Under the pieces are notes generated by a model. The model did not search any database. It was not told the origin of the DNA and saw nothing but the letters and a program-made list of their open reading frames with translations. From NCBI GenBank assembly GCA_047495785.1, contig JBLDXI010000031.1, positions 1,550,001 to 1,614,000 on the forward strand: a stretch of 64,000 bases of DNA. The letters are read 5' to 3'. Both the position numbers and the translations under genes were made by a program. Numbering within the stretch: position 1 is the first letter of the stretch; every line of letters begins with the position of its first letter. This DNA comes from Lepidodermella squamata (Eukaryota > Animalia > Gastrotricha). This document shows positions 9,494 through 63,370 of the stretch, piece after piece.

Positions 9494-11410
9494 TTAAATT
9501 TTGGGAACTTTTCTGTCCAGATAATATCTGTCATTTTCCCGAGCAGTGACTTTTATTAGCCAGTCATCCATCGCATTTGGCAGCTGGGTTGGTACGTTAA
9601 AATTGCACGCAGTTTCTGATTCGATAGCATTGCCTATAAATCATTCAATGTTAAGAATTAGGCGTATGATGGAGTTTTGTTAGGTTCAATTTCGCCCATC
9701 TTCTGTTCCGTCCTGTTCGACCCAAAGCGATTGTTGGAAGTGAATTCAGAATATCAAGTTTTTTAATTCAAGTTTTGGCGGTGAGCGCGCACATTTTCAC
9801 GAGTTCACTTCTGCTCTCTAATTGGGTCGGACAGAACTGAGATAAGCGCAGAATTGAGCTTTGTTAATTAAAGATTACTTAGAATTCTCTCGAAACCAGC
9901 CAGTCTAATCATCACGGAATGATTGTCGTTGAGACCAGCAGTGAAGACCAAACTATCGAGTGATTCCATGAAAACACCCGCAGTGAACAGAATCGGCCTG
10001 TCTGCGACAGTCACGGTGAGCGGCACGCCCAGCATGGTTTCAAGGTCTATGAATATCGGCGATGTAACCGAGGCGATTCGGTTGAGCTTTGCATTGAGCA
10101 ATGTTATCTGGGCAGCATATTCTACGGAAACAAAATGAATTATTGATCATAATTTTGTGCACGTGAAACAGAAATTAGCCTTAAATGTAGAAATAAGCTC
10201 ACCGTTAGGACCTAAGCGGCGTGAGAAAGTATGTGTCACCGACAGGTAGTAGTCCCCTCGGTAGTGAACGAATGGAGAGCCACCGCGTAGAAACAAAGGG
10301 CCCGTTTCTGTCTCCTCGCTACCGATGACAAAGGAACAATCGACAATTCTTGCTTCGTCATTGCGATGCGGCTTGAAGTCACATTCCATAATGCGCAAGT
10401 TGGGCAGGAACTCGTAGACCAAGCGCAGACGGCCATTGTAAACCCACGGGGACCAATTTTTGGCGAACTGGCCAAGCTTCAGCTTCTGGCCCGTTTTGAT
10501 CGAGTACAATACATTGTCGCCCCATGCCCATAGAAACGGACGCCTAATTTTTAATGGTATTAAACATTAATGATTATAGCTTGATCGAATTAAGTTCTTT
10601 TTGTCGATTTTGCCAAAAGGCTATACAAGGTTTCCCACCCATTCAGATTGAAGAAAATAACGTCTCTCAATTATCCTATCAAACTGTTTGCTTGTATTGT
10701 GTCATTACGAAACCCCAAACTGACCTGAGAAATCGATCAGCGTAGTGATGGGCATTTGTGATTTCCAAAAATACAGTGCCATTGAGCTCGAAAATTCTCG
10801 CATCTTCCGGCCCCGTAATCGCTGGCTCTCGCATCGGAGTTGGAATTCCGACGAAATATCCCGATTTAGGAACAATGTGCATGTGCCTATCAATTTTCAT
10901 CGAATAAATATAGCTGTCCTGAAACCGATTCTGACCGCCGAGACGGTTCGCCACGCGAACAGCACATCGAAGAACGCCTTGATACGGCATGCAAGAGGCC
11001 TGCATAGGAAACGGCCCTTCGCCCGACAGCCATTTTTCGGCAGCTCGAACGTGTTCGGCAAACATGGTTCGCACGTGGCTGTTGACAGTTTGCTTGAAAT
11101 CAAATAGAATCGAGGTGGTAACTTGAGCTGAAGACTCGCTGACGTTGCTGCAAGTTTTACCGTTAACGTATGCGCCGCTCAAGTTGAAGCTGAAATGGCG
11201 ATCACCCTTCACCGCAATTATAAAGTATTTGTTACTACCGCCGTTCGAACCGGTTACTGATTCATTCAACTCGGCCTAATATTGATCGCTTGCATCAACT
11301 GCCACTGGATAATTGCCGTAACGCACCGGTAAAAACAGCAGTGTCCAGCAAACTGAGGCGATGAGGAGTAGCAATAATACTTTTCGAAAGCTTTCGATTA
11401 TTGAGATCAT
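9494..11410 (-). pseudogene. Bmt/GT91-like beta-propeller glycosyltransferase copy A, with in-frame TAG at codon 45; exons 11410-10725, 10543-10203, 10121-9879, 9633-9494
   Basis: Same exon layout and motifs as its paralogues (GPEDAR, KNWSPW, LRGGSPF); TAG at 11276-11278 where copies B and C have a Lys codon. Confidence 0.72.
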
Positions 11411-12200
11411 GGTTAATTTTGAAATATTTTGGGATGAGGACAGGACGAGTAGAGGAGAACGAGAGGGTCTCTGGTATTAAGAAGCAATCTGTTTATTGAC
11501 TCGTTCCAGGCGCTGCATTTTTTCTTGAATCAATAAATCAAGCCCCCCACATTATTATTTTATAGCTGTCGGCTTTTGCACCCAAAAAAACTCAGACGTT
11601 AAACTAGAACCTCTTAATAACAACCACTTGCACGCCATCGAGGGGCGTGTGTAGTAGAACTTATTTCTCGCTTCAAATTGATCGTGGCATTTTCCTACCA
11701 TGAATTATTTCTATCTCATTCCGTTGTCTGTTGTCTATTCTGGTGTCGATAATGGTGCCAAATTGCCGTAAAACATCGCGCATTTGTGACATATTGTTAG
11801 GTCATGAGTCATGAGACAAACGGCTTAATGAAATTATGAAGACCTGGCTTTCTTTTGAGCCCAACTTTCACCTTCCATGATTTGTTACTAAATTTTAACA
11901 CTTTCCAAGCGCATTTGAACCAGGAAACAGCCTGAACCTGAACCTAATGGTGTTTTCCACCGAAACGACACCTCAAAAATAGTTAAAATTCACTGAAAAA
12001 TCGTGGAAGGTCACGCTTGGGCTGAGAAGAAAGCGAACGCTCAGCTGCGTTTGGATTCATCGGCAACATCTTACATTTCACTATTATTCTTCTCCATTTT
12101 CCATTTTATTTGCAAGCTCAAACTATGAAATGCATTTTGGTCGTTGAAGTTATGCGCTGATAATTGCATTTCGTGGTTCCATAGACAACACTGTAACAGA

Positions 12201-12491
12201 TAGGAAACTAACAATCTTTCCATAGTGAATTTATTCGAGCTGTTATTGCAAAAAGGGCGGCACGCGACCACTTTTTATGCCACCTAACGCCCTATCCGCC
12301 CATTATAATTTTAATTAATTTCAAAAATTAAAAAAGCGACAGGTACCTCTTTTGAAAATTCTGATTTTCTGCTCATAAATACTAGAAGCGGCCCTCTATC
12401 TAATGATACCAGGCACACCTAGTGTCGCGTGCCGCCCTTTTTGCAATAACAGCTCGAATAAATTCACTATGGAAAGATCGTTAGTTTCCTA
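12201..12491. mobile_element. MITE with ~70-bp terminal inverted repeats, possible TA TSD
   Basis: 12201-12270 is the near-perfect reverse complement of 12421-12491. Confidence 0.7.
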
Positions 12492-13036
12492 CATAGATAT
12501 AATTCAGTAGATCGCCCACTCGCGTGAAAAAGGGTGTACGCCATGGGCGCCAGATGGTCAGCTGATTCATCAGAGGCTTGGAGGCCAAGTAAACAATATA
12601 TTCGATTCGTTTTTTGTTGGTTCCGATCGAAGTTTAAAAATTTCTCAATTTTTGTTGATGGTTCCAGATAGGTGACATTCTCGCCAATAACTTTCAATAA
12701 GGAGGAATCGACCATTCGGTAAACACGCACCTATTGCATAGAAAACGACCGAGTAACAGCCTCAGGAATTGGAGACAAGTCACGTAGAATCGTAGAATCG
12801 TTATCATGAACTAGAACTAGGAAAACAGAAATGTTTGAAATCATCCTGCGGCCAATGGGGTCGTTACTGTGACTGAAACGCCCTTCTCATCCTCATTGGA
12901 CAACTGATTAAGTTCTCTATCGAGTCTGAAGCCGTCTCGAACATGTTTCTCGGCCAAGTCGATTAGAGAAACGCGCAATAGTTTATATGTCAATTTTTTT
13001 TATATAAAAGTATATTAGGTATGAAATTAGGCCGAC

Positions 13037-25619: not shown

Positions 25620-26776
25620 ATGACAGCTGTAACAAAAGTGGCGATCAGATTTAGATTTAGCCTGGCAGTGTGTTTTCTTGTTTTGATGGCGATTTTTCTT
25701 TGGTTCAACTTTGGACATGATATCTCGTTCAAAATTACATCTAATTCTTGGGAATTCCCAGACTCAGTTTCGCCGCCGTGCTCAAACCTCCCTACCTTTG
25801 AGGTGAGAAACGAAACCTGGAAGATTCCGAAAATTCTACACCAGTCGTGGAAAAATGACACCTTGCCGGAGAACTACGCCCGGTACCGGCAGACCTGGCT
25901 CGACATGCACCCCGGCTGGCAGCACCACCTGTGGACAGATGCCGAGAACCGGCTGCTGGTTCAGTGCCACTACTCGTGGCTGCTGCCGTACTACGACGCG
26001 TTCCCCGTCGGCGTTCAACGGGCTGATATCTGCCGGCTGTTGTACGTGCATCGTTACGGCGGAATCTACGCGGATCTCGACACGGAGCCGATGAAAACTA
26101 TGGACTTGCTGCTGAGCAATTATTCAAATCAATCCGTTATTTTAAGTGAGAATTCAATATTATTTGAAAACCAGAGGCCATTATTTTATACATATTGATA
26201 GGCTACTCGAGCGAGAACTACCATTACGTGGATAACGTACCTGCGGCTTGGATGGCGTCAGCACCTGGTCACCAAATCTGGCTTCTAACAGTGCTGAAAA
26301 GTTCCTTATTGATTCAAAGTTTGCCTAAAGCTACACGGTAAGAAGAAGCAAGGCCCCGAAACCCGTAATAATCAGATTGATAATAGTTTTCCTTTTTTAG
26401 CCCCGATTACATCACCGGGCCTGCGGTGCTATGGGTGGCGTTGGATGACTATTGGCGAATGTGGAGATCTAGACTGAGCGATGCGAAAATTGGCAACAAA
26501 AGCGTTGAAACAGGACCTAGAAAGATTCGAGACATTGCCATCTTGGAACCCGGCCTCATTTTTCCTTACCGCTATTACGAGACCGAAAAACCAATCGGAA
26601 AGATTTGTCATCCCAAGAAAGCTACCTTCAACGAAACAGCTTGCAAGGCCAGCTTTCCCAACGCCTACGTCATTCAATATTCGTGCTTTTCCTGGGGCAA
26701 AGAGTGGGTCGGCTTTCTCAAGAACGCCGGCTTGAAGGAAAACACCTACTGGCATAACAAAGAGAAAAAGAAGTGA
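25620..26776 (+). CDS. GT32 (DXD) glycosyltransferase copy a, OCH1/SUR1-like; exons 25620-26145, 26203-26337, 26401-26776
   Basis: TM anchor; IPKILHQSWK, HPGWQHHLWTD, RADICRLLYVHRYGGIYADLD, WMASAPGH, TGP motifs. Confidence 0.88.
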
Positions 26777-27288: not shown

Positions 27289-27854
27289 CAAATAACGAGT
27301 CGAATGGCCCTATTAAAATAATGCCTACATTTATGTAGCATTGGCATTAGACTCGCACCTGGCGGAAGCTTGATAGAAGTCAGCCGAATTTTCAAAAACA
27401 GCGCCTGAGATATTTATTGGATGCAAAGACTCATCATAGCTGGCTTTAAGTTTAAAGCTAACGTATCACGAAACACATTATCACATTTAGAGACTTGTGA
27501 AACCTAACTTCACAACTTTTCAGAGGTATCAGCAATTCGGAACAACTTTTCGAGTAGCCCTATTTAGATCATGCATCGAAAAGCGATTTTATGTCGGTTG
27601 AATCCGTGGTCGAAAAAGGAACGCACAGCTTTCTTTAGACATTGAGGTTGACGGTACGAGCGGAACCTCTGCGCGACATGCGATGTCTATGTCGATTCAG
27701 TGGGTGCACTGCATTACTTCGCAAACGGTTACCAATAATCGACGACTGCTAAAGCTTTGATATTATGAGGCTTCAGACATTAAAGTAATTTCTCAGCCAA
27801 AGCCAATCGATTGATAAGTATTGTGTGCATTTATTACGAATTTCGCATTGAATA

Positions 27855-28101
27855 CACCAGAAAAAAAATCACCCTAATTTGGGTGATAAGAAATCGGACT
27901 TTTAGCTTGTGAAACCCCCTCAATTAGGGCCCTGTGAGTATCCTAATTCACGGATTTTCAACATTTATCTGAATTCATGCCCAAAATCACCCTAATTCAT
28001 GTAGAAAAATTCAGTTTTTTATCTGCGAAAACCATGAATTCAGATACCGAAACTAAATTCATGCTTTCGGTAGATGAATTAGGGTGTTATTTTTTCTGGT
28101 G
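27855..28101. mobile_element. CAC-terminated MITE (CMC/EnSpm-like), 2-bp TSD TA
   Basis: TIR caccagaaaaaaaatcaccctaatt; essentially identical copy at 57715-57960. Confidence 0.85.
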
Positions 28102-28317
28102 TAGGTTGTAAATTAGTTGAATATGTGTCCAATAAATAAGATTATGCGTGAAATTGTGCTTTTAAAATTTCGCGATTTTTGCAAAAATATTCGCTAAGTT
28201 ATATGCGTATCGAGGCGTGGAAACAGATAGTAATCGAGCTTTTATGTGCTCTAACATATAACGGCGATCAAAAGAGTTACCGGAGAGCTTTCTCCAAGCA
28301 CTTCTGTGTTGTGTTTA

Positions 28318-29079: not shown

Positions 29080-29412
29080 TTTACACAATAAATAGCATTT
29101 CGAGCGGCTGAAAAGTTTTGAAATTGTTGTCTTTGTCAATAACCTCTAAGATGTGACTTCGCTGACCTACTGGTAATTGTTAGCCGTTGATCACGTGATA
29201 ATGGGCGATAGCTCAAAAAAACAAGCGTAAATCCTCTATCGAACGGTATAGTAGCCTCGTAAAAAAATTGGTGAGAATTAGACACACTGTATGTTGATAT
29301 ATTATCCAGTTCTTTATTTGATTTATGGACAGTGAAGCAGAACTAAATAACTATATCTTAGCACCCATTTAGTCTTGAGCCACTTGTCTCATTCTTCAAT
29401 GGTTTGTATAAT

Positions 29413-43275: not shown

Positions 43276-46064
43276 ATGCGTCTCCAGATGCGAGCCTTGC
43301 TGCGTCGGCTTAAAAACAAAGCTCCCGGTCACGATAATGTCCTGAATGTCCTCATAAAAAACGGTGGCCCCACGTTTCGGAGTCATCTGAAGTTCATCTT
43401 TGAGCTATGCCTTGCCACTGGCTACATGCCCGCCGGTTGGAAAATCGCGATCGTCGTGCCCGTACTAAAGGAAGGAAAAGATAGCCGTTTGGCGGATTCA
43501 TACCGCCCAATCTCTTTACTACCAGCCTTCAGCAAGTTACTGGAGCTACTAGTCACCCTGTTGCTGCTGGAATACCTCGACCAAAAGCGTCTGCTACCCG
43601 ATCATCAATACGGTTTTCGCCGCCTACGTGGTGCTGTGGACCCGCTGTTTCGCCTAATTAGCGACGCAGCCCTGGCTATGGCCAACCATAGCAAGCTGAT
43701 AGCCGTATTTCTAGATTTCCGTGCCGCTTTCGATACCGTTTGGCACGCCGCCTTGTTGCAGAAGCTCAAGGATTCTGGGGCCCCCGAGCCAATTGTGCGC
43801 TGGGTGGCGAACTTCCTCAGCGACAGAAGTTTTCAAGTTCGGGTCGGCGACGACCTAAGCGAGCCCCAGGAAATCAAATGCGGTGTCCCTCAGGGAAGCC
43901 CTTTGAGCCCGCTTCTTTTCATATTTTACTGCGCAGATATGCAGCCCCTGAGAGTAAACCCCGACGACGGTCGAAAAATCGTGGGCACCGGCACTTATGC
44001 CGATGACGCTGCAAACTGGGCTTGGGGGCCCCATTATGAGCAATGTGTTTCGCGGCTTCAGTCTCGCTTACGTTCGACAGAAACCTGGTGTGCTAGATGG
44101 CGACTTGACCTCAACCCGACAAAGTGTGAGTGTATTATAATCGGTCATCATGGCGCCTCCTCCCCCTCCGTCCTATTGTCTATTGGTGGTGTGAAAGAGG
44201 TTAAGTACCTCGGAATGGTGCGTTCCCATCTCCCCGAAAACGGATTAGCTGAAATAATTTCCCCGAAATTGCTGTGTGACCGAAAACACGTTTCCCCGAA
44301 AAGCAAGTTTCCCCGAAAACGCGCCTGAGCAAGCTAAAACTCACTTCTTTGTACAAAGTGAACACTTGGCCGTGTTTACATTAATTTTCGTTAAATGTTA
44401 TTTACGCTGTTACTAGCTCAAATTATGGGTCCAAAGGTCACTCGCAAAACCTGCGTCAAATTTAGGCTTGTTTTGCAGATTTTCTAGAAAATCAAGGTGA
44501 GCTCATAAATTAAGGAAAAAATGCAGGTAGCCGTGTGATACACATATGAAGCCCCAGGATTATACCTGGAATTTTCCGAGCTCACCTTGATTTTTAACAA
44601 ATTTAGGAGTATTGCTTTGATTGTTGACCCTAATCTTGAATGTTGAACGAGCTACCTTCACTGAAAAATTTCAAACCAATCACATACTAATATTCTTGTA
44701 TTATTACTATTGGCAATATAAATTGATATCTTTATTAACGCTCAAAATCATGATTATTAAAGTTATTCAAGTTCCCTTGCTAATTTCGGGTAAGTAAACG
44801 ACGCAGATGTCAACTTCCCGGGTTCTGGGTCCCGGGTCAATCTGGGGTTCGAGCGGCGGGAGAGGTGAATCGCCTTGAGAAGCTTGAGACAGTTCAAGAC
44901 CACCCTGCGCGCCGATAATCGGCGACATCGTTGAAGACAAACTGCCTCTTCAACATTAAGTTCGCGCTTCTTAGCTGGTTTAACCATCGTTAAGGTCTTT
45001 GCGGGCGCTGTTAAATAATAATAAGCTAATATAAACGCGTTACACAGCTACAATTACCGGGCAAATGCGGCGTAATAGCGGTTGAGTTGCAGCCACACGC
45101 TTCTTAGACGTCGCAGGCTTGCGCCCTTTGGGTTGTAGCAAGGTAAGGCTCACCAAAGGAGACTGATTTTTCGACCTTTACGTCTTCGTGTTAGTCAAAA
45201 CTTGCATAGTATCAAATTATTAACTGATCTCAAATGACGATGTAGTAAGTAAGTGGCGAGTTATAGAGCGCGTCGCGCCGTCTGTTAGCATTTCAGATTT
45301 AAACCGATAGTCTGTAAGGACAAGCCATGTGTCATCGCTGTTTCCGGAAAAAGCTACTCAACCACTGTTTCAACACAACTCAGTCGCGCTCACTGTTTTC
45401 GGGGAAACTGTTTCGGGTTAACTCTTTTGGGGGAAAATATTTCAGCTAATCCGTTTTCGGGGAAAATTTTTCGGGGGCACGGGAATAAATCCTCGGAATC
45501 ACATTGACTTCGAAACTCTCGTGGGAGAGTCATCTTGATCGGCTATCAGCGAAAATCAAACCCCGAGCTGCATGCTTACGCGGCATCGCCGCACGAAAAG
45601 TTATCCCTAGTGACCTCTGCGTTCGTTTTAACAAAGTCCTCATCGAAATTGTCCTTACCTACGGGTCACCAGCCTGGTATTGTCTACCCAAGTCTTCCGA
45701 GCTACGTCTGTTCGGCTTCCAGGCCCACGGCTTGAAAACTGCATTGGATCTGCCTATCGAGTGCGACCCTTTCGGTGTTGTCGTCGAAGCTGGCGTGGAA
45801 GCAATCAGCGACGTATTTAAGCATCAACTGATGCGGTACGCCATCAGGTGCCTCAACGCAAATGACGGGATGAAGGATTACATATCCTACCTACCTACCT
45901 ACCTACCTACCTACATATCCTACATATCCATTGCCAGCTTCCAGCCTGACGCCTTCGGCCTCCGAATGCTGGAGAAGCACTGTCCAGCATGGCACTTGCG
46001 TGACTGCATTAGTGCCCCGGCTAAGCCCTGCCGCCTCATCACCGACATTTTCCCTAAAAACTAA
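43276..46064 (+). mobile_element. 5'-truncated LINE (Jockey/I-group-like) ORF2 reverse transcriptase, split by an insertion
   Basis: KAPGHD, YRPISLL, QYGFR, LDFRAAFDTVWH, GVPQGSPLSPLLF, YADD; KYLG|ITLTSKLSW is restored by removing 44217-45499. Confidence 0.92.
44217..45490. mobile_element. TIR element (Mutator-like) inserted in the LINE RT
   Basis: 8-9-bp TSD (c)ctcggaat; long imperfect TIRs built from ttccccgaaa repeats. Confidence 0.75.
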
Positions 46065-47250: not shown

Positions 47251-49248
47251 TTAATTTTTATTATCGATGGACAATTTATTTTATATTTAAAAAAGAATTT
47301 GACATCGAAAGTAATCATTATGCACACTTTTGCTAAACACGTCACGTGATTTTCTACGCAAACCCGGATAACGGGAGCTTCGAAGCCGCTGCGTCCTGGT
47401 ACGTCTCATGGATTTATCTGCCATATGTGTTTTTTCCAATAAAACATGAGTTTCTTCTACTTCAAGCAAACTTCTTTTTAATTAGTACGAATTTTAACAC
47501 TTTAACTGCCCAAATTACGGCAAACGTACCGTTGCGGTCGTAACTAAGTATCGGTATTTCGTATCGACACTAAGTTTCGTTATTTTGTACCGACATTTTT
47601 GCGGTTAGAAAATGCCGGTACTTTGTCACGTCATTGCCGGTATTTAATACCGAATCGAGATTAAAAACTAAAGCACGGGGCACTTATAACAACCGCAAAC
47701 CAAATCATTGATGGGATTTTCAAGCTTCCGACTGAGAAATGGTTTCGGAAACCAAATTAGTGCGCGAATAAACACTGGTTTTGAACAAAACAATATACTA
47801 AATGGAGATAATTATGCTATAATGCGCCTAGTTGAGATGAAATAACCGCAGATCCTTATACATCCATATACACATGGAATATCTTCTTTCGAATTTATAA
47901 TGTTTCGATTGATTTTGCTTTACGACTTTTATTTTACGAGAGGGAAAAAGTCAGATTCGAGCTCCTAAATAACAAGTGATCTACACGGACTCCTTTTTAT
48001 TCTGATCATGAATATTGGGTTACGAATATATCACAACTTCAAAAACAGGTTTTAAGTTGAACATTGATATCTTTAGGCATAGAGCCGCTTCTGGAACAGA
48101 GTCTTATCTCATTTTCGACGAAGCTATAAGCTTGAGTAACCGTAAGTTATCGTTTTAACATTAGGCAGGGGCGTACCTTAAATTAGTATGAATTCAGAGT
48201 GAAGAATGTAATTTTTCGACCAAGAAGCGATAAAGAAAGCTCTAACCGCAGACTTTTTGTTGCAGGACCGATTTTGATTAAGCGCCCCTTTGATCACGGC
48301 TTTGCTATTAGCTGCATTTTTCAAGAGCGGGATGCGGGAACTGGTTCAAAATGAGTGTATCAACGGCTACACCAAAGCTTGGCAGTGTTCCAAACAGGTG
48401 TCCCAAGAAGGTAAACCGAGTCAAAACATTGAAGCCAGAGAAGCCGGGAATGGTTTATCTTTTATCTGGTATGCGCGGCGTTGTTCCTGGCACCATTCCA
48501 AGTCAGCTCCCTAGCGAAAGGCCCCGCTATTAATAGAGCGATACTACCTCCAAGTTATCCTGATATTTTCTGAAGCTAAATGCAGTCGGTTGCGCTGTGT
48601 GATTTAGAGAAAGCTGTTATATTGCTCTCCCGGTAGAACTGTCCATTCACGGTCCGGCCCGTCTTCCACAGCTCACAAGTTCGGAGTGGATCCGAAGTAG
48701 CCAACCTGTTGCCAAGTCAGGTTTTCCCTCAAAAAACTGGTTTTCCGAAAAAACCAGCCAGCAGAAAATGAGCGAATCTCACGCCGACTTTTAATGAAGG
48801 GCTATGGTATACGATGGTCTGATAAAATACCAGCATCATCCACGAAAATCTAAAAAGATTTCAATAAAACTAAACCAAATTCGTTAGCGCTCGAAGTAAA
48901 AAAGTGGTACGGTAGTACTCTTATGTGTGCGTAGTATATTCATGAACAGAACGCGCGCTTTGGCGCAGCGCATAATAGCATAAATGTTACCGCGCGCAAT
49001 ATAATATAATAAAAGTATGGTCAATCAAAGGCAGTTATTATGCCGCAATACCGACATGCAGAACCACGCTGGAGCTCCATAGCTGAGGACACATCTATTA
49101 TAACACCTTTCTACGAGCAATCCCGTGACGGCTAGCAGCTCGTAATCGTAAACTCGTATCATGAAACATTGATCAGATCTTTATTTCACCGAATGAATAA
49201 ACAATAAATAGCACAAATAACCATCTTTCTCACACATCGATGGCTTAT

Positions 49249-51572
49249 CTAGTTCGTTCCGAAGTAATTTCCCACGAACGTGTCGTTGCAATCGAACACA
49301 AATGAAATGGCTTGAATGAAAACATTGTAATCGTTATTTGGGTTACGTATTGTCACGTCCACGCTCTGAACATCTAGCGGAGATCCGTCACACGGTATGG
49401 TCAGACTCGAACTTTCAGCGATGTCAACTGGCACCGGCCGATGTTCATTCTCGAAAAGAAGCTGAAGACTGTCGTAGGGCGCCTTGTGGACAACTCCGTT
49501 CGATAGTGTAAATTTGGCATCGATGGACAAGTGACCTCGCTTTCCAATCTGTTTAAGTTCGTGCGATATTGCTAGCCGTGGCAATTTGCATAACATGGGG
49601 CCACAAACCACAGATTTGTGTGTTAAATTGTCGAACTTCAAATTCATCGATGAGTTCTGGACAGCAGCAAGCTTGAAAAGCTCGAAATAGTCATTCTTTT
49701 TATTGTGCGGATCGTTGAAGACGGACTTATCGCTGGACAAAATTGCGTCTTCCAATCTGGTGCTGCGCACTCCTCCTGGGGTAACAAATGATCCGAAGCA
49801 TTCGGATTCCGCTGCTTGGCTAGGTAGACTTTGTTTCAGAGGCGTGCTGCCAGCTTCGATGAGTTGTTGCACCGCTCTTCGCATTGATTCGATGATAAAT
49901 TCCGACACCATCAAATGCGCTTGATCACTGGCGTGGCCATGGTCCCGCTGCGATATGTAAATTCCTGAGAAAATAAACAATATAGATACAAAACTTGAGG
50001 GGAATGGAATAGCGCGAATCAAAATTATTCATATACACGTTGCTTAATTAGTTAAAGTAGGGTCTAAATATTTGCACCACTAAAGTGAGGTTTTAGAGCT
50101 TAAGTTTAGCGTCCAGGCTCCAGGCTTTAACTCTTTCGACTCTTCGGGAACACAACGGTCCCCTAAGCTACGCCTATAAGTATATCGGGATTTCGAAAGC
50201 AAATTCACATCATGTTTCGGGCCCTCATCAAAATCGAAGAAGGCGAATCGAACTCTGGGCAGCACCCGTTCGATCCTGCGCGAACGATCATCAAACGAAA
50301 TCAGTGAGTCACTTAAGAGCGGCGGAGACGTTGGATAAACATGTAACATCTGCGGCGAGGCGCCTCGGAATCCCATACTGCTAATAATAGAAATTTACCA
50401 TTTGCTAACTGTTCATAACAATTTGCAATAAAAATGAGTTGTATGAGTATGAGTATGAGCTCTATTAGGAAATGCCGTATTTCAACGAATGGATTAAGAA
50501 AAAGGCCGGTCTTTCGACATATGATTTCGCCGTCGCACTTTAAAGATGCGAGCATCATTTACAACGATAGTTAAGTTTAGTTTTTCTGACAAACAAGTAT
50601 ACCGATTTTGAAACGTTCTATGAGCTCAACATTTCTACTTTTGGCTAATCTGACGGGTTAATTGGTGGTTAATTCCTGATACTTACCTTTCAAATCGGCC
50701 AAATAGCGCTTTGCAATGAGTTCATCGCAGAAAAAGCTCGTCGATCGCACTGTGGTAACATTAGCCGCCCTCGCGAGACGAAAATGAGTGCTCCGCTCAG
50801 GATCCCCGACATCGGAGCAATCAATTAATCCCTCCATCAAAGGCTTGATCGGGAGGAAATCAATATCGATGATGTGGGCGTTCGGCTGCGCAAGAGCTAG
50901 TTTCTTCAGCATCTCGGAATAGCCCTTTTCGAATCGGCCGTCGTCATTTAGCGCATTATCAAGCAGGATCAAATCGACAGAATCGCGGTTCGGAAGCAAT
51001 TCGTCGATGCAAAAAGCAAAGAATATGCTTGGAGTGCCACCGACGGCCAAATTATCGCAAACGACTTCGAAACCGTAAGGTGTAAATGCTGATTTGAGCC
51101 AGTTGCAAACCCTAAGCACGTAGCCTTTCTCCTGTACACAATTTCCAAGTTTTAACAGAAAAATCACAACATCTGACGATTGGCTTACCGGGTCTACAGC
51201 ACGAGGTACCGACGTTGAGCCGCCTAGAACCGCAACAGTGAAAATGCGTTTTTCAGGACTAGCTAGCCAACGATGCTTTGCGGGATCGAATAGTCGTAGA
51301 AGGGCCTCCTGAAGTTTCGTCTGGTCACCGAAATGAGCGATACCGCTGGCATAGAAAGGCTTGTAGATCGAGCTGTACGGATGCGTTTCAAGGTGACGGA
51401 GGAAATATAATGTATCGCTATCGAAGCTTGATGGGTGAGATGGGCGACGCAATTCCATACCTCGTGTCTTTTTCCATGGCAAATTGGCACAGTAATCAAA
51501 GTAGCAAAGCAAAAAACAGGCAGCTGAAAAAACAACGAAGGCGAGTGCTGTAGAAGATTTAAAGAACTGCAT
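49249..51572 (-). CDS. Membrane-anchored SGNH-fold esterase/acyltransferase copy 2 (3 exons)
   Basis: VAVLGGSTS, NLAVGG, DNALND, RDHGH; paralogue of 29413-31262 with the same intron positions. Confidence 0.8.
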
Positions 51573-52988
51573 CGAATCTTTCGATAGTATGATGGAAAGT
51601 TCGCTATCGGAAAGAATCGGAAAGAAAGTATTGGTGAATTTCGAGTTATCAGAGTCTTTGGCGCGCGATCATTAAGCGGCGGATTTATATATGTCGTAGC
51701 CTAATAAGCAATTTAGTTGGATTGGGAATCCAACTAGTTGAGGAGCTAGTATATAAAACAATCAAACATAATTATTGCGCAAAACCTCCCTGGAGTGAGG
51801 TGTTTAATGTTAAACAACCAACTACCAACTCGATTGATAGCGGGACGACTCCAAAACTGCCGAAAAATAATAGAAGGAAGCCAAAACAGCCAAACAATTC
51901 AGTCATTTGTTATGGAGTAGTCCCATTTTTTCTTAGCAATTTCGTTCATTCAAAAATTGTTTAATGCTAAGCCATGGTAACATCGGTATCGGCCACCCTG
52001 GAATGCCAATTTCCCTCCACGAAATTGTACCGAATGAACAAATTATTAGGCGGCATATCAGCTGGTAAAGTGCGACTTTGCCCCTTATTTAGTCTTCATA
52101 TAAATTTATTTTCAATTTATAGCATTGTTAGCTCAATTTTCATATTTCATATTTTCACACCATTTTCAGAAACCACCTGGGTGCCGCAGACAAAAATTAC
52201 CGTCAATCGAAAATTAAGGTTGGGGAAAAATAGCACTAAATCGGGATAAAATTCTAGTTAGGAGGTCAATAATATTTTGCATATTTTACAGAATTCTATA
52301 ATAAGCAGATTTGGGCTGGGGGCTGGGGTTGCAATTTTGGCGGGGGCCGTTTAGCCAGCTGGGGTTGGCGATGCGTTGCTGGCTTTTCATGACTCAACGC
52401 GATATGAGCATTCTCCCCTGAGATACCGTTGTCAATTATTGGTATTGAATTGGTTAATATCATTTTCAGGCTAATCTCCCGGAATCTAGGACCAGTTCGA
52501 TAGAAAGAAAATAATGAATAATCCGAAATATTGAATCCCGTGAAAAAAATCGGTTGAACTGGTGGTGGACTGGTTTGGCAATTGAACATGTTTGAGAATT
52601 GTTGACCTTACTTGAAACTACTATCACGTCTCACGTCCCGAAAGCGAATATTTATAGAGGTGTCGCCTGAGGCGATGATCGCCTTCCTCCATTCATGATT
52701 TCAATTTCTTGAAGAATCTGGCGTGACGTTTTACTTAACTTGGCATTTGAAAGTGAGCGCAGTATCCTTTATTCTCATTATCGCACAAACACTGCCGATG
52801 CGGTAAAAGATAAAAGATGAATGAACTGGTACTTACTCTCGATGTTTAAAATGTTACTACATTATTAGCGTTCGACTCGTGCCTCGTGAATAAAAAAATA
52901 CAATTTAATGAGATCGAAAATCCTCACTTTTTATTCGTGACTCATTTTTCAAACCTTTATCTAAAAAAGGTTGTAGGTTGTAACAACA

Positions 52989-54609
52989 ATGCACAAGCAT
53001 TTTGGAATAAAAAGCCTTGTATTTCCAACAACTTGCATGCTCGTTCTAGTTGCCATTTTGAATCGCCTCAACGATGACAATTCATTGAAAATTCCATCAG
53101 TCGAGCGATTGCTAGCTTGGAAATCAGCCTCGCTTCTGTGCTCAAACCTCCCTACCTTTGAGGTGAGAAACGGAACTTGGAAGATTCCGAGAATTCTCCA
53201 CCAGTCGTGGAAAAATGAGACCCTGCCAGAGAACTACGCTCGGTACCGACAGACCTGGCTCGACATGCATCCCGGCTGGCAGCACCACCTGTGGACAGAT
53301 GCCGAGAACCGGCTGCTGGTTCAGTGCCACTACTCGTGGCTGCTGCCGTACTACGACGCGTTTCCCGTCGGCGTTCAACGGGCTGATATCTGCCGGCTGT
53401 TGTACATGCACCGTTACGGCGGAGTCTACGCGGATCTCGACACGGAGCCGATGAAAACCATGGACTCGCTGCTGAGCAATTATTCAAATCAAAATGTCAT
53501 TCTAAGTGAGTATTATCAATTCATAGCACATTAAAGTTTACACACTGAAGTCGCTTGGTTCAGCCTACTGGTGAACATTTTGCACGGCACAATATTAGGG
53601 CTAATCGGAGTCATAAAATGCTTGGATAGTTTTTTAATTGTCTCAACGGTTCTAGTTCATAGCCAAAGGATATGAACAAATCTTCTAAATTCAGCAAAAA
53701 CCCCTTGAAAGTATTTGGTGAAATCTGTGGAAAGTTTTATATCGTCGTTGAAGAACTCGGATTTAGGCATGTTTAGGTCAGTTTCATACAAAAATTTGGC
53801 AATTAACAAGTCATTTGGTTTTCTCCCTTCAATCACGTAAAAAACACCGCTTTTTACTTGTCACCAGTCACCATGAAAGTGACGGAAGCAAGCCTTAATC
53901 CGTGTTATTCAACGACGCTAACAATATCTTCTCCGCCAAACGCCAAAAAGTCCGATTCAAATTATTTGAAAGCAAACTGCCAAAAGTTGCTGAAATCAGT
54001 AAAATCGCCAACAACGTACTATACTCGAAGAAACTTCATGATTCAATAACAGGTTATATGAGCGAAGATTACCAGAAGGAGGATAATGTACAAGCAGCTT
54101 GGATTGCGTCGGCGCCCGGGCACCATATCTGGCTTTTAACGGTGCTGAAAAGTTCCTTGTTGATTCAAAGTTTGCCGAAAGCTACAAGGTGAGTATTTGT
54201 AAGGCTTCTTATAGTGAGCGAAAATTTTCAAGTTTTTAGACCTGACTATATTACGGGACCAACGGTTTTATGGGTGGCGCTGGACGACTATTGGCGATTG
54301 TGGAGATCTAAATTGAGCGATGCCAAAATCGGCGCCAAAAGTGTTGCCGAAGGACCTAAAATGATTCGAGACATTGCCATGTTGGAGCCCGGCCTCATTT
54401 TCCCCTACCACTTCTACGACTTCGACAAGCCCATCGGGAAGATTTGCGGTACTCACAGCCCGACGTTCAACGCGACAGCCTGCAAAGCCAGTTTTCCCAA
54501 TGCCTACGTCATTCAATATGCCGGTTATTCGTGGGCAGGAGAATGGAATGGTTTCCTCAAGGCTGCTGGTTTGAAAGAGATTGATTACAATGAGAAAAAG
54601 GAGAAATAA
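52989..54609 (+). CDS. GT32 (DXD) glycosyltransferase copy c (3 exons)
   Basis: IPRILHQSWK, RYGGVYADLD, WIASAPGH, YITGP; frame intact across GT-AG introns. Confidence 0.88.
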
Positions 54610-55140
54610 TATTATTGAAATTATCTTGAAATAATCCAAGACGTCGGAATAGATTCTTGACATTAAAGAATAATTAACAATATTTGATATACAATCTATA
54701 AATATATGTATACTGTGGAATGAAGAATACTGGAAATGAAAATAAAGGCGTGAAACAACGCAATGCGTGATTTTGTAGTGCTAATGCTAACCTTGCAACA
54801 AAAATGTTCCAGCCGGTGTTGAGCCTGACAATATTGACGTATGTCTATTTGGCCTTCATGTATTATAAATCGCAATTGCAATTTCGAAAATAGCGACAAG
54901 TTTTGTTCGTTAGATAGGCAATTTTGAGTCACCTGTTGAAAAATAATGAAGATTGCGGTTACTAATAATGTGCTGAACTGTCGAACTTAAACTGACTGGT
55001 TCATGCGAGAAAAATAAAGGAGCACTCGTTTTTTAACACCATTCACCATTTATTGGCCACCAATTGCGTCAGAAATTTTTATTATTATGAGCTACCAACA
55101 CCCAGCTAAAGTTAAATTCCACATTCAGAGGATATCAATG

Positions 55141-57571
55141 TCATATTGCGGGAACAGTTATGTTCAAAAAGTATTTATCGTTCTCTCGATTTGTGATTCT
55201 TTTCAGCCATTCTTCCATCTCAATGAACAAGCGGCGTGATAGGTTCGTCTTGCAAGCTGCATCAGACTCGATAGCTTTTCCTGTCGGATAAATGGTAAGT
55301 ATTTCATCCGGGCTGAGTTCGATTTCTGATAACTTACTTAGCAGGCCTTCGAAACCAGCGAGCCTGATGATCAAGCAGCGGTTGTCGTTGAGCCCAGCTG
55401 AGAAAATCAGACTGTCGAGTGATTCCATGAAAATACCTGCGCCGAATAGAATCGGCTTATATGTTGTCTCGGGAGGAATAGAAAGTGGCACACGAAGCAT
55501 AGTGTCGAGATCTATGAATATCGGCGATGTGACCAGTGCGATTCTGTTGAGTTTCGCATTGATCAATGTTAGTTGAGCAGCATATTCTGTTAAGAGTAAA
55601 TTGAATCTGTTAAACAATATAATTCAATATGCTTCCGGGAAGCCAGAGACTACCCAAAATCCTAAATTTATTTGTATACCACATTAACACAGTACCTATG
55701 AATTTCATGAAATCCTGACAGAACCTACCCCCTGGGCCAGGAACGCCGAACCTGCTGACATAGGTGTGCGTCACCGAGAGGTAGTAGTCACCCTGATAAT
55801 GAACAAACGGAGTGCCACCGCGAAGGAACAAAGATCCCTTAGCAGTCTCGTCGCTACCAATAACAAACATGCAATTGACAAGCTTGGCTTCGTCATCGCG
55901 ATGCGGCATGAACTCGCACTCGATAACGCGCAAGTTGGGTAGGATTTCGTACACCAGGCGTAAGCGGCCATTGAAAACCCAAGGTGACCAGTTTTTCTCC
56001 AGAATAGCAAGCTTCAGCTTTTGGCTAACTCTGATCGAGTAGAGTACGCTGTCGTCCAAAGACCATAGATAAGGTCGCCTAAGTAAACATAAGTCGACTA
56101 AGTAAAGTACACACTTCACCTTAGGGCTTGAAACATTCGACTTCCACCCAGCGAAAATCGACAGCAGAGATGTCAAGATCACATTGCCATTCAGTGGCGT
56201 AACCAGCTGGTTGTTGTGGTTGTTCAAACAACTACCAAAATAAAGACTCAAAAACCCCTCTTCGGCCTATTTTCCCTAGAAAGTGGCTCAAATTACTTAT
56301 AACGTGGAGGAAATGTTTGCAAAATTGCCAAAAAATTTCTCGCTTCGCTCGATAACCCGATAGTTCCGATATTTCCCTGGCAAAATCGCATTCTTCGACC
56401 TTGGATTCTCCAGAGTAAAATGAAAATTTCACTCTGAAATCCACAACAACTACCAAAAATGTTTCCTGGTTACGCTCCTGTTGCCATTGGATGGCATGTA
56501 TCAAACTGAAGTATGAAGTATGAGCAACATTGATATTTGTATGATATTGTACGGGTTTTTTATTTTTTATTCATATCTGAGATTCGTAGCACGAGATGCG
56601 GGCATGTTGACGAGGCGGAGCCGAGTCGACATGACCAAATCCAGAATCCAGATATAAATGAATTACGAGTGCTATATCGTAAAACATTCCATGAGCATGG
56701 GTACTAACACTATATTTTTTGAGCAAATGCTATATTTCTCCTAACTTAGGTTCTCTTGTTTGTTCTGTTCATAGGTCTAGTTTTGGTGAAAAACCATCTT
56801 ACAAAAAACGTTTTCTTGAAAGTTTTCTCTATCAAAAAATTAAGATATGGCTAGATATGGAGAAAGACAATTTCCCGTCAACACACAATATGTCAAAAAA
56901 ACGAAATAATTAAAAATTGCCGTGCAGCTTTACCGTAGTAGCGGCGCATCGTGTTCGTAGTAATGTGCAATCGTAGTAACCAAGAAAACCGTGCCATTCA
57001 GCTCAATGATCCTTGCATCCTCCGGCCCGGTTTCCTTCGGCTCTTTGTGCGGACTAGGAATGCCAACAATGTATCGCGATTTCGGAACCGGGCGTAAATC
57101 CCTATCGAGCTTGATCATGTAAACATAACTGCCCTGGTATGAATTTAAGCTGTCATTGATGCGGTTCCACACTCGAATAGCACATTGAAGTTCATCTTTG
57201 CGCGGCATGCAGGAGGCCTGCATCGGAAACGGCCCCTCGCCAGAGAGCCATTTTTCGGAAGCTCGCTCGTGATCGGCGAACATGTTCCGCACGTGACTTG
57301 TGACCGTTTCCTTGAAATCGAATAGAATCGAAGTTGTAACATTGGCTGACGACTCGCTGATATCGCCACAAGTCTCTCGATTAACATGCGCACCGTTTAG
57401 AGTAAACTTGAAATGGCGGTCGCCTCTCGCCGAAATGACAAATGTTTTGAAAGCATTGAATGAGGAATAGGTTGGAAAATTGCTGTATTGCGTATGTAAA
57501 AGCAGCAGTGAAAGGAATGCTGATACCACATAGAGAATTAATTTCTTCTCTTGGCGGCTACGGAATAACAT
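55141..57571 (-). CDS. Bmt/GT91-like glycosyltransferase copy E (4 exons)
   Basis: TM anchor; GPEDAR, EKNWSPW, LRGGTPF. Confidence 0.8.
56192..56480. mobile_element. hAT-type MITE in intron 1 of copy E
   Basis: TIR cag.g.cgtaaccag, 8-bp TSD ttgccatt; empty site in copy D at ~40420; related fragment at ~20998-21050. Confidence 0.82.
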
Positions 57572-57714
57572 TATTCTAGAAATATAGAAAATCGTGACGG
57601 ATTATTCGCAAATCAGCTCTGAGCTAAGAACATTCAGTCAAGGATTTACAATTTACCAGCCAAATACTAGCCTCAGAAGATATCGAGAAGAATAGCAAAC
57701 CATATAGAATACAA

Positions 57715-57960
57715 CACCAGAAAAAAATCACCCTAATTTGGGTGATAAGAAATCGGACTTTTAGCTTGTGAAACCCCCTCAATTAGGGCCCTGTGAGTAT
57801 CCTAATTCACGGATTTTCAACATTTATCTGAATTCATGCCCAAAATCACCCTAATTCATGTAGAAAAATTCAGTTTTTTATCTGCGAAAACCATGAATTC
57901 AGATACCGAAACTAAATTCATGCTTTCGGTAGATGAATTAGGGTGTTATTTTTTCTGGTG
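57715..57960. mobile_element. Second copy of the CAC-terminated MITE, 2-bp TSD AA
   Basis: Matches 27855-28101; empty site at ~41618 in the paralogous segment. Confidence 0.88.
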
Positions 57961-58718: not shown

Positions 58719-60348
58719 TCAAGCTTTAGGAACCTTTTTGTCCGAATAATATTTGTCATTTTCTCGTCCGGTGGTATCTTTTAGCCAGTCTTCCATTGCG
58801 TTAGGCACACCACTCCATATATTTGAGTCACATGCTTCGTCTGACTCGATAGCCTTTTCTGAAAATTTGAATCACTTTTGAATATATTGGAAACAGGTGC
58901 TGCAATCCAGCGGCTTACTTAGCAGGCTTTCGAAACCAGTGAGCCTGATGATCAAGCAGTGGTTGTCGTTGAGCCCAGCTGTGAAAATCAATCTGTCAAG
59001 TGACTCCATGAAAATGCCTGCCCCAAACAGAATCGGTCTTTCTGCAACATTTACAGTGAGCGGGACATTGAACATGGTCTCGTGGTCAATGAATATCGGC
59101 GAAGTGACTAGTGCGATTCGGTTAAGCTTGGCATTAACCAGAGTGAGTTGGGCGGCATATTCTGCAAGAAAGGTTAAGACATCTCTAAAATTAGAGGGAT
59201 AGCTTACCATTAGGTCCGAACCGCCGAGAATAGGTGTGCGTCACGGAGAGATAGTAGTCACCTTTGTAGTGAACGAACGGGGAGCCACCGCGAAGGAACA
59301 AAGAACCCGTGTTGTCCTCCTCGAAACCGATAACAAACGAGCAATCCACCTCGCGTGGTTCGTCGTTGCGATATGGCACGAACTTGCACTCCATCACGCG
59401 CAGGTTGGGCAGGAATTCGTAGACCAAGCGCAAGCGGCCGTTGTAAACCCAAGGTGACCAGTTTTTAGCCAAATTTGGCAGTTTCAATTTCGGACCAGTT
59501 TTTATCGAATATAATATGTTATCGCCCCATGACCATAGAAAGGGCCGCCTTCAAAATGAAAATTGAGCGTATTTATTGTGATTATATTACTCTATCATTA
59601 TATGATAATATCCTCTATGAAAAGTGGAAATTCTCAGCGCGCCTAAACTATTTAAGTTTGGAACTGTTTACCTTATTAGTGTCTTGGAGCCGTAGTAATG
59701 AGCGTTCGTAATTGCTAAGAAAACAGTGCCATTCAGCTTAAAGGTTCTCGCATCTTCCGGTCCGTTGAACATTGACTCTCCTATCGGAGCAGGAATGCCC
59801 AAAATATGGCCCGATTGAGGAATAATTTGCATATTTTCATCGAGCTCTATCGAATATATGGAGCTGTCTTGATATCGATTCAGGCCGTCGTTGAAATGGT
59901 TCCAAACTCTTATGGCACACAGAAGCAAACCATTGTGAGGCATGCACGAAGCCTGCATAGGAAATGGCCCTTCACCCGACAGCCATTTCTCAGACGCTCG
60001 CACGTGGGTGGCGTACATATTCCGAACATGGCTTCTAACTGCTTGTTTGAAGTCAAACACAATCGAAGTGGTAACATCAGCTGAAGCCTCGCTGATGTTG
60101 GAACAGGAATCTCGGTTAACAAATGCAACACTGAGGGTGAACTTTAAATGACTATCGCCTTCCACTTCAATAACAAATTTTGCGGTCATTGGCTCATCAC
60201 TAAGAGGGCTAATCGCCGCTTTGACCGGTGCATTTGTTACCCAGAATTGCGAACTGCTAAATTGATTCAGTGTGAGTAACAGCGACAAACACGCTGATGC
60301 GATGAAAATAGTAGTTAGGGCCTTGATCCGGCTCTCGAAAAAAGTCAT
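58719..60348 (-). CDS. Bmt/GT91-like glycosyltransferase copy F (4 exons)
   Basis: TM anchor; GPEDARTF, KNWSPW, LRGGSPF, AGLNDN. Confidence 0.8.
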
Positions 60349-60999: not shown

Positions 61000-61092
61000 T
61001 GTTCGCCTAAAATCATCATTTTCTCGTTTAGTAATATCTTTTAGCCAATCTTCCGCTCGATATTTTTGAGTCGCAAGATTCGGCTGACGCGA
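61000..61092 (-). pseudogene. Remnant of a terminal exon of the Bmt-like family
   Basis: Degraded EDWLKDITKRENDD-like sequence similar to exon 4 of copies F and G. Confidence 0.5.
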
Positions 61093-61605
61093 AAATTTAC
61101 AATTTCAGGTTTCAGGCAAACAGGTGCAGCAATTCAGCTAGAGATCTAAAAAATAGATAAAATATTTTCCTAACCACCTAGCCGTTCCTGAGAATTGTTA
61201 AATATGGTGTTCATGGTGCTATAATTATGAGTGCCTTTCAATCACTCGAATTCTATAAAGTACGACGCCGAACATCGATAGCTACAAAACAGTAAACCAC
61301 AAAGCCTTTTTTTACATTGTTCGCTGTTTTGTAGTAAAATGAAAAATCCGCTGTTTTGTCGCGCTCAATATGAATTAGGTAGATACGCTCAAAATTATTC
61401 AAGTACAGATTCAGGCAAAATGCAGGTCTGCTTTTTACCGCATAACGCATAATGCCTTAAGTATTAAACCAAGCCATTGTAATTACTAGCAATTGAGTGG
61501 ATACTGGATAACAAAATCCCCGATTCCAGAGCCACTGGGCCATTATTAGGATTTCCATTGGTAATGCAGCAAGTCATCCTCAATTTTTCAGTTGATAAAA
61601 TCGGA

Positions 61606-63370
61606 TCAAACTTTAGGTACATCTTTGTTCGCATAGAATTTGTCATTTTCACGCCCAGTAATAACTTTCAGCCATTCTTCCAATGCGTTAGGCACATCGT
61701 TCGATATATTTGAGCCGCATGCTTCGTCTGACTCGATAGCCTTTCCTGAAAATTGAATAATTTAGCAGACAGTTGTTGCAATTCAACAATTTACTCAGCA
61801 GGCTCTCGAAACCCGTTAGCCTGATGATCAAGCAGTGGTTGTCATTGAGGCCAGCGGTGAAAATCAAGCTGTCTAAAGACTCCATAAAAATGCCGGCACC
61901 AAACAGAATCGGTCTGTCTGCAGCATGTTCGGCCAGCGGGGTATTTACCATGGTTGCGAGGTCTATGAAAATTGGCGAAGTGACTAAGGCAATTTTGTTG
62001 AGCTTCGAATTGAGCAATGTCAGCTGAGCAGCATATTCTGCAAAAAAGGACAACGCTCAATTACTTTGAGAACAATATATTCATTGTTGGTCCGTCTACA
62101 ACGATAAATGGGCAGTCGAAATCGATGAGCTTTGACCTACAACACAATAAAGTACCTTTAGGACCGCGTCGACTTGAGTAAGAATGCGTCACTGATACAA
62201 AGTAGTCATCCCGGTAATGAACGAACGGGGAGCCACCACGGAGGAACAAAGAACCCGTGTTCGCCTCCTCGCTACCGATAACAAACGAGCAATCCACCTC
62301 GCGTGGTTCGTCATTGCGATAGGGCATGAACTCGCATTCCATAACGCGCAGGTTGGGCAGGAATTCGTAAACAAGGCGCAAGCGGCCATTGAAAACCCAT
62401 GGTGACCAGTTCTTGGCCACATTCGGCAGTTTCAGGGCTGGCCCAGTTTTCATCGAATATAATATGTTATCGTCCGATGACCATAGAAAGGGCCGCCTGA
62501 ATAAAGCGAAAAAGCTCAAACTTGGAAGTTATAACAAGAAAGTTCCCCATGAATGCCTTGATAACTCTCTGCGAAACAAATTGTTCGCAAATAGACCCAA
62601 AGCTCCCAAGCTCTCCATAATTAAGTAGAAATAACAAAACCAGTTTTGGATAATATAGAAGCTACCAATGCGCCCAATTTTCTTTCTGCGTACCTTAACA
62701 GAGTCCTGCCACCGTAGTAATGAGCGTTGGTGACGGCCAAAAATATGGTGCCATTCAACTCGAATATTCTCGCATCTTCAGGTCCGTTATACCGCCGCTC
62801 TCCTATTGGGCTTGGAATGCCCAGAAGATGGCCCGATTGAGGGATAATTTGCATCTTTTCATTTAGTTCAATCGAATATACCGAGCTGTCTTGATATCGA
62901 TTCAGGCCGTCGTTGAACTGGTTCCAAACTCGTATCGCACATCGAAGAACACCCTTGTAAGGCGTACATGAACTTTGCATCGGAAACGGCCCCTCGCCTG
63001 AGAGCCATTTCTCGGAAGCTCGTACGTGGTCTGCGTACATATTCCGAACATGGCTTCTAACCGCTTCTTTGAAGTCGAATACAATCGAAGTGGTAACATC
63101 AGCTGAATCCTCGCTGATTTCATGACAGGATTCTCGTTTAACACTCGCGCTGCTCAAACTGAACTTGAAATGGCGATCGCCATTGACAGAAATTACAAAT
63201 CTGCCGTTACCCGCATCACTGACAGACGTAGCGATGGGTTCTAGTACTGGATCATTTCTTGCCCTTAATGGAGAGTTACTGTATTGAGTCAATGTAAACA
63301 GCAGCGAAAAACATGCTGATCCGACGAAAAGAAAAGCCAATGCTTTTAGCCGGCTTTCGAAGAGTACCAT
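61606..63370 (-). CDS. Bmt/GT91-like glycosyltransferase copy G (4 exons)
   Basis: TM anchor; GPEDARIFELNG, KNWSPW, LRGGSPF; closest to copy F. Confidence 0.8.

Follow-up and report, generated by a model that had tools for sequence, protein, structure and literature searches.

A candidate array of Golgi-type glycan-modifying enzyme genes in Lepidodermella squamata

Does a stretch of animal DNA in which genes of three unrelated enzyme families alternate encode one glycan pathway, or does the alternation have another origin? This question is raised by contig JBLDXI010000031.1 of Lepidodermella squamata (GCA_047495785.1), of which we analyzed positions 1,550,001-1,614,000, a stretch of 64,000 nucleotides that is called the window and to which all coordinates below refer. 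The interval 9494-63370 was studied in detail, following up a sequence-only reading that had proposed a cluster of seven Bmt/GT91-like, three GT32 and two SGNH genes acting on a common mannose-rich product; these families are here called A, G and S, respectively. We consider the locus to be probably a lineage-specific array of genes for secretory-pathway, Golgi-type glycan-modifying enzymes, which tandem and segmental duplications would have assembled around an S-G-A triad, and for which we infer the Golgi location, the donor and acceptor specificities and any shared product.

The array and its duplicated block

All stop-to-stop open reading frames (ORFs) were clustered into families by blastp, and spliced models were assembled manually, guided by the conserved ends of exons and by GT-AG sites. 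The interval of ~54 kb was found to hold seven family A, three family G and two family S loci, in the very numbers and places that had been claimed, within a stretch of densely packed, intron-containing genes (G+C content of the window, ~42%). The family A loci all lie on the minus strand and consist of four exons each; their introns have phases 2, 1, 1, and the encoded proteins have 458-475 amino acids (aa). All family G loci lie on the plus strand with three exons (intact proteins of 341 and 361 aa), and both family S loci lie on the minus strand with three exons (514 and 517 aa). These models use GT-AG splice sites throughout, and most of their introns measure 46-250 nt. Every paralog pair tested showed purifying selection, with a ratio of nonsynonymous to synonymous substitution rates (dN/dS) of 0.16-0.31, so that the intact copies appear to be under constraint. 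The loci are as follows.

9494-11410, minus strand: A1, four exons, with an in-frame TAG at 11276-11278 just past the membrane anchor, at the place where A2 has AAG
14535-16355, minus strand: A2, intact, 475 aa, with the anchor at residues 8-35 and a weak BMT match in exon 2 (E 0.023)
18245-20691, minus strand: A3, intact, 470 aa, spliced model
35630-41476, minus strand: A4, a copy of A5 at 90% aa identity, with exon 3 split by a transposon
55141-57571, minus strand: A5, intact, 458 aa, with a weak BMT match in exon 2 (E 0.024)
58719-60348, minus strand: A6, intact, 466 aa, spliced model
61606-63370, minus strand: A7, intact, 466 aa, in which an apparent frameshift is a 49-nt intron
25572-26776, plus strand: G1, three exons, intact, 361 aa, matching PF04488 (E 2e-16)
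32594-33831, plus strand: G2, pseudogene without a start codon and with at least two frameshifts
52989-54609, plus strand: G3, intact, 341 aa, transcribed and spliced as modelled
29413-31262, minus strand: S1, three exons, intact, 517 aa (dN/dS against S2, 0.24)
49249-51572, minus strand: S2, three exons, intact, 514 aa, divergent to G3 at a distance of 1.4 kb

In-frame GT-AG models with one N-terminal anchor each were obtained for 9 of the 12 genes. The products of these intact genes (A2, A3, A5, A6, A7, G1, G3, S1 and S2) have just one hydrophobic segment each, located within residues 3-51; the only exception is A3, with one additional marginal segment. This pattern fits a predicted type II or signal-anchor topology. 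The proposal that all of the genes encode an N-terminally anchored protein with one transmembrane helix thus stands for the nine intact copies; the other three, A1 (in-frame stop), A4 (split by a transposon) and G2 (frameshifted), are disabled. A1 is a probable pseudogene or nonsense allele. In A3, A6 and A7, apparent stops and frameshifts close to the 3' end were rejected as defects, since all copies have a GT-AG intron of 49-60 nt (245 nt in A1) at this place, and an 'eighth' family A fragment at ~35.6-36.0 kb was rejected as the 3' end of A4.

The interleaving of the families, as had been described, is present, and it arises largely from one duplicated S-G-A triad. Self-blastn aligned two regions at 80-94% DNA identity, intergenic stretches included, and these are copies of a single block that was duplicated as a unit.

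29411-41619: copy 1 of the block (S1-G2-A4), the self-blastn partner of 49247-57714
49247-57714: copy 2 of the block (S2-G3-A5), in which all three genes are intact

Because the block was duplicated as a unit, S1-G2-A4 and S2-G3-A5 count as one arrangement and not as two. Within it, the synonymous divergence (dS) is 0.155 between A4 and A5 versus 0.448 between S1 and S2, and the DNA identity spans 81% to 94%; since both measures are uneven, later gene conversion in the block is suggested. In A4, exon 3 is interrupted by a non-autonomous DNA transposon of 3.77 kb (35955-39724), whose insertion break maps to 55460/55461 in A5 and which has apparent TA flanks and three internal tandem repeats of ~370 nt (38.2-39.1 kb). 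Its terminal inverted repeats of 32 nt (35955-35986 and 39693-39724) are perfect, and their identity suggests that the insertion may be recent. As a separate observation, exon 1 of G1 shows 93% DNA identity to G2 and G3 (25764-26155 versus 32687-33076 and 53124-53514), with merely 75% between the last exons of G1 and G3 (26209-26739 versus 54060-54578), a contrast that suggests gene conversion or a mosaic origin of G1.

Family A and the GH130/GT108/GT91 superfamily

The assignment of family A was approached mainly through its homologs, since the Pfam tests of the window copies used single exons, and the spliced proteins were represented by homologs. Single A exons gave no Pfam match at E 0.1. 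A profile of exon 1 from the seven A sequences retrieved 15 proteins only from 1.84 billion representative proteins; the named homologs are exclusively uncharacterised proteins of the nemertean Lineus longissimus and the annelid Owenia fusiformis, and the closest ones (33-39% identity) are encoded by a compact animal genome whose contigs come from ENA metagenomes. A second profile search with the 15 homologs added further Owenia paralogs and nothing else new. When ten homologs were scanned singly against Pfam, nine matched BMT (PF12141) with 16-36 bits, three of the ten being above the cutoff, and the remaining one matched GH130 instead. In the alignment of the family, 22 of the 46 members matched BMT, versus three that matched GH130 (PF04041; best E 0.0028, below threshold), which leaves BMT as the sole recurrent Pfam match. 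The GH130 hidden Markov model (HMM) also weakly matched the EDPR region of the homolog P0004.

As a proxy for the fold, we modelled the Owenia homolog P0038, which shares 26% identity with A7 and aligns collinearly to it over residues 12-448, by AlphaFold with 22 homologs and the window A exons as alignment rows (predicted local distance difference test score (pLDDT) 81.8; predicted template modelling score (pTM) 0.82). In a Foldseek comparison of this model with the PDB, the first 36 matches were all GH130 or GT108 proteins (E 3e-9 to 1e-6, probability 1.00 at the top), the former being beta-mannoside phosphorylases and hydrolases and the latter Leishmania GDP-mannose mannosyltransferases. 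The nearest Atlas model was that of an annelid cluster of 461 aa (template modelling score (TM) 0.75). Family A is thus predicted, by way of P0038, to adopt the five-bladed GH130/GT108 propeller fold. The motifs PED[A/P]R, KNW.P, LRGG.P and TH[ST], which are invariant or nearly so in the family, presumably fit a GH130-type active site. In particular, we take the Lys/Asn, Arg and His positions of KNW, RGG and TH, all kept in family A, to be those that bind the donor phosphate in GH130.

We read family A as an animal family in its own right within the GH130/GT108/GT91 superfamily, with GT91 as its closest neighbor in sequence. At the superfamily level the Bmt/GT91-like call was sound, given the GH130/GT108 fold of the homolog model and BMT as the nearest Pfam family; the window exons themselves stay below the BMT threshold. 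Like the fungal Bmt/Wry enzymes (GT91, PF12141), family A is multi-copy and joins a type II anchor to a luminal domain, and the hydrophobic segment at residues 7-35 of A2, A3, A5, A6 and A7 fits the topology expected of BMT-type proteins. Its match to the fungal BMT profile, at positions ~245-326, covers the region from EKNW.P to RGG.P. Unlike the fungal enzymes, family A occurs in animals and has introns, its window exons reach 13.7 bits versus a cutoff of 28.3, and its proteins have 458-475 aa versus ~650 aa for the fungal Bmt clusters of the Atlas. With the GH130 enzymes and Leishmania GT108, it shares the five-bladed propeller of the homolog model (target-normalised TM 0.49-0.59 in Foldseek) and an EDPR-type motif region, seen as the weak HMM match of P0004. 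These enzymes are, however, soluble and cytosolic, whereas family A is membrane-anchored and has an additional N-terminal beta-rich segment of ~90 aa, and the sequence identity is 10-14%.

Since a membrane anchor is combined here with a protein of this superfamily, the A proteins are most likely inverting, GDP-mannose-dependent beta-mannosyltransferases, that is, membrane-anchored five-bladed propellers that would add beta-mannose from GDP-mannose. The GH130 fold hosts hydrolases, phosphorylases, and both true and dual-activity beta-1,2-mannosyltransferases (PMC12814180). GT91 has been described as fungal and without a solved structure (Taujale et al. 2021, PMC8476585), and no paper on animal GT91 members was found in full-text literature searches.

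Genes of this type also stand in tandem elsewhere, with three copies within 11 kb in Lineus (L002) and two within 6 kb in Owenia (L012). The Lineus and Owenia genes have a single exon, versus three introns in the window copies. In the proteins P0005 and P0020 of the metagenomic animal, similarity ends exactly at window intron 3, after G[FV]..LL, which suggests that this intron is conserved and was read through in gene prediction.

Family G and its SGNH-like neighbor

Family G is firmly assigned to GT32 on its domain match and its catalytic motif: exon 1 of G1 matches Gly_transf_sug (PF04488) with 60.9 bits (cutoff, 23), and G1, G2 and G3 all contain YADLD as their DXD motif. This bears out the GT32 call of the sequence-only reading. 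The nearest database relatives are unnamed metagenomic and Logan proteins (35-57% identity), some of which are machine-named as Och1-like or inositol-phosphorylceramide mannosyltransferase, and apparently none of the matches of the G search is a close homolog from Lineus or Owenia. A homolog with 49% identity to family G weakly matched the structure of an Och1-type alpha-1,6-mannosyltransferase (9n3s, E 3.4e-5). The G proteins share PF04488, the DXD motif and the type II anchor with the known GT32 enzymes (Och1, Sur1/Csg1-type; animal A4GALT/A4GNT), and differ from the named ones in having unnamed metagenomic proteins as nearest relatives and in showing no detectable Gb3_synth domain. By inference, they would be DXD transferases that add an alpha-linked hexose. 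In the single RNA-like run that was searched (X1), mismatch-free contigs carry the joints 53505>54053 and 54188>54240, both GT..AG; since these equal the two modelled introns of G3, this gene is transcribed and correctly spliced.

Family S is more isolated. The read-through of exons 1 and 2 of S2 (304 aa) found no homolog among 5.8 billion proteins, and S pieces found nothing in two scans of JGI metagenomes. A counterpart is nevertheless present on L014, a Logan contig (42% G+C) of run SRR31012058 that was fetched via the best G homolog, P0026. On this contig (L014:609-3657), an intronless GT32 gene, 49% identical to G1 and G3, is followed 438 nt downstream by an S-like gene; the two are on the same strand, whereas S and G of the window are divergent and 1.4 kb apart. 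The spliced S-like protein of L014 aligns collinearly to both S proteins of the window, starting at the anchor and including blocks I, III and V of the SGNH scheme (~21% aa identity; phmmer, 33.9 bits). These blocks, read by eye, are as follows.

Block I: ALAGGSISIGRAV in L014 and AVLGGSTSVPRAV in S, with the pattern GGS[TI]S..RAV
Block III: VLLEFNVND in L014 and ILLDNALND in S, with the pattern LL[DE]...ND
Block V, in textbook form: DKFHPSKSTHGYMAEFL in L014 and DHGHASDQAHLMVSEFI in S, with the pattern D..H......H...[SA]EF

The Gly of block II is present in S1 and S2 and replaced by Ala/Ser in L014, and the nucleophile motif in block I of S is GGS instead of GDS. In protein-language-model features, the clusters nearest to S are SGNH/GDSL clusters (0.87-0.88), and the ten best named matches all belong to one clan. 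As a further observation, the S-like gene of L014 has an intron after block II, at a position unlike those of the window S genes. Judging from these motifs and features, it is likely that family S comprises SGNH enzymes with a GGS nucleophile motif, which would probably act as esterases or O-acyltransferases and which have an additional C-terminal domain of ~200 aa. They resemble the SGNH acyl-esterases and acyltransferases (plant TBL, the luminal domain of CASD1, the two-domain CE17 acetyl-mannan esterases) in having Ser, Asn and Asp-x-x-His in SGNH order and spacing, and the membrane-anchored or secretory SGNH enzymes in combining an N-terminal anchor with an extra C-terminal domain. They are unlike the known SGNH enzymes in the GGS of block I and in giving no HMM, PDB-sequence or fold match.

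In the mechanism that we propose for these two families, G would add a sugar, and S would add or remove an acyl group of that sugar. We incline, by a modest degree, to the view that G and S act as a functional pair.

A possible shared pathway or a duplication hot spot

The layout of the interval, with three adjacent non-homologous enzyme families of one plausible pathway, agrees with the usual definition of a metabolic cluster (at least three such families). A pathway is further suggested by the copying of the S-G-A triad as a unit and by the presence, side by side, of three glycan-related families of like topology. As in the biosynthetic clusters of fungi, plants and bacteria, non-homologous enzymes of a plausible pathway are adjacent here, and the G-S pair recurs; unlike in those clusters, the enzyme genes are mixed with unrelated ones, some of the members show decay, and the linkage to A is absent in the relatives sampled. 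A pathway that joins all three families is doubtful in our estimate. The more specific version, a clustered animal pathway leading to a glycan or glycolipid that contains beta-mannose and is O-acylated, in which GT32 would add a sugar, the linked SGNH enzyme would acylate or deacylate it and the GH130-fold enzymes would add beta-mannose, we regard as unlikely.

The neighborhood was also found to be less uniform than had been described, because the interval does not consist of the three enzyme families alone; three arrestin-domain genes and a long interspersed nuclear element (LINE) are present as well.

13040-14306, minus strand: arrestin-domain gene, inside the interval
21867-23302, minus strand: arrestin-domain gene, inside the interval
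23694-25169, minus strand: arrestin-domain gene, head-to-head with G1 at a distance of ~400 bp
2215-4524, plus strand: arrestin-domain gene in the window, left of the interval, a paralog of the other three
43276-46064: LINE reverse transcriptase, inside the interval

Several observations weigh against our preferred reading of the locus as an array of glycan-modifying enzyme genes. The four arrestin-domain genes are paralogs (Arrestin_N and Arrestin_C), and three of them are interleaved with the enzyme genes. In the older-looking copy of the triad, G2 and A4 are dead and S1 is intact, so that the triad was not maintained as a unit. In run X1, whose contigs cannot rank expression, G3 alone was matched exactly, the S2-region contigs listed were ~6-7% mismatched (9/160 and 8/110 letters), and the A5 region gave low-depth fragments only. 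Linkage in relatives had been put forward as a check. The GT32 and S-like adjacency recurs on L014, which may be from another species or an old paralogous locus. For family A, no G or S was found within <=10 kb of nine A-like loci, at seven distinct places in Lineus, Owenia and the compact metagenomic animal, where the flanks searched were 10 kb at most and less at contig ends. The G homolog loci L003-L005 had no A or S either.

The family assignments themselves meet similar objections. When A exon 2 was searched against BMT (PF12141) at E 10, two of the seven copies matched with 13.7-13.8 bits (E ~0.02; gathering score, 28.3) and the rest gave nothing. S pieces matched nothing in Pfam and NCBIfam, including the SGNH models of Lipase_GDSL/Lipase_GDSL_2 type, comparison of S with PDB sequences gave chance matches only, single-sequence AlphaFold of S was unusable (pLDDT 35.7), and hhalign of S with E. 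coli TesA was not significant, the single local match (P 0.16) being located at block V. The SGNH call is plausible from blocks I, III and V and from the language-model features (0.88), and finds no backing in Pfam, NCBIfam or PDB sequences.

A substantial if somewhat lower probability goes to a duplication hot spot whose families share no pathway. On this view, fast-expanding, lineage-specific families (A, G, S and the arrestin-domain genes) came to lie together in a very gene-dense genome, and one segmental duplication made them interleave. One block duplication accounts for both S loci, for G2 and G3 among the three G loci, and for A4 and A5; the interleaved fourth family is unrelated, there is about one gene per 3 kb, the A-like genes of relatives have unrelated neighbors, and 3 of the 12 genes are decaying. 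What a hot spot explains less readily is that the GT32 and S-like adjacency recurs on L014 despite identities of 49% and ~21% aa, that A, G and S are all glycan-related and of the same topology, and that purifying selection acts on all intact copies. A different proposal concerns the origin of the genes and not their function, and is compatible with either the pathway array or the hot spot: a foreign-type island, in which A, G, S and a nearby SABATH methyltransferase gene, horizontally acquired or patchily distributed, would have been gathered in a transposon-rich region. The methyltransferase family is best known from plants, the window contains the LINE, the DNA transposon and high-copy repeats, and S has no homolog among the 5.8 billion proteins at the lengths searched. 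The nearest G relatives are metagenomic, one of them lying beside LptF/G, MacB and inositol-1-phosphate synthase genes (a bacterial context) and another lying in a protist-like context, and GT91 has been described as fungal (PMC8476585). We nevertheless give this island a small chance only, as all A, G and S genes have spliceosomal introns, the A homologs in an annelid and a nemertean suggest an old residence in animals, and no donor lineage was identified.

It is improbable, to a slightly greater degree still, that the A proteins act in degradation, as GH130-type beta-mannosidases or mannoside phosphorylases, and that the locus serves glycan turnover or digestion. This would agree with the best structural matches, which include GH130 hydrolases and phosphorylases, with the hosting of all three activities by one fold (PMC12814180) and with window exons below the BMT threshold. 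Against it stand the uncleaved-looking N-terminal anchor and stem, which are typical of Golgi transferases, and the nearest sequence family, which is BMT and not GH130 (22 versus 3 members match). Phosphorolysis is not known to have a role in the secretory lumen, and the Lys/Asn, Arg and His positions of KNW, RGG and TH that we take to bind the donor phosphate are kept in A. In a GH130_3 hydrolase, the phosphate site is reported to be blocked by a Glu (PMC12814180). The array of glycan-modifying enzyme genes, with A as predicted transferases, is the reading that we retain.

Other features were observed in the window outside the three families. At 4614-5681 on the minus strand, a single-exon gene of 355 aa encodes the SABATH-type S-adenosylmethionine (SAM)-dependent carboxyl methyltransferase (PF03492, E 6e-37); this Pfam family is best known from plants and is hence unusual in an animal genome. 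At 6857-9022 on the plus strand, a single-exon gene of 721 aa combines an ANF_receptor ligand-binding domain with hydrophobic helices behind it and resembles a class C G-protein-coupled receptor. The stretch 28152-29145, between G1 and S1, contains a set of ORFs on both strands that resemble one another, in an inverted-repeat-like arrangement. A repeat of 248 bp occurs twice (27854-28101 and 57714-57960, 99.6% identity), and contigs of a DNA run reach depths of up to ~7,800, versus ~60-120 elsewhere, at 53650-54049 (in G3 intron 1), 51650-51849 and 56050-56640; both the repeat and these very-high-depth stretches look like high-copy mobile elements.

Family A, with its annelid and nemertean homologs, represents an animal family in which a propeller of GH130/GT108 type appears to be combined with a Golgi-type anchor, in at least seven local copies. 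If its proteins transfer beta-mannose, this would be an unrecognised kind of animal glycosylation, and their soluble domains would be targets for the first GT91-like structure. If the pathway of beta-mannose addition and O-acylation is true, fungal GT91 and Leishmania GT108 would for the first time have animal counterparts, in the A enzymes. The recurring pair of GT32 and SGNH-like genes offers a concrete two-gene module, and, if co-expression and a shared product hold true, the locus would be one of a small number of animal gene clusters that bring several families of glycan genes together.

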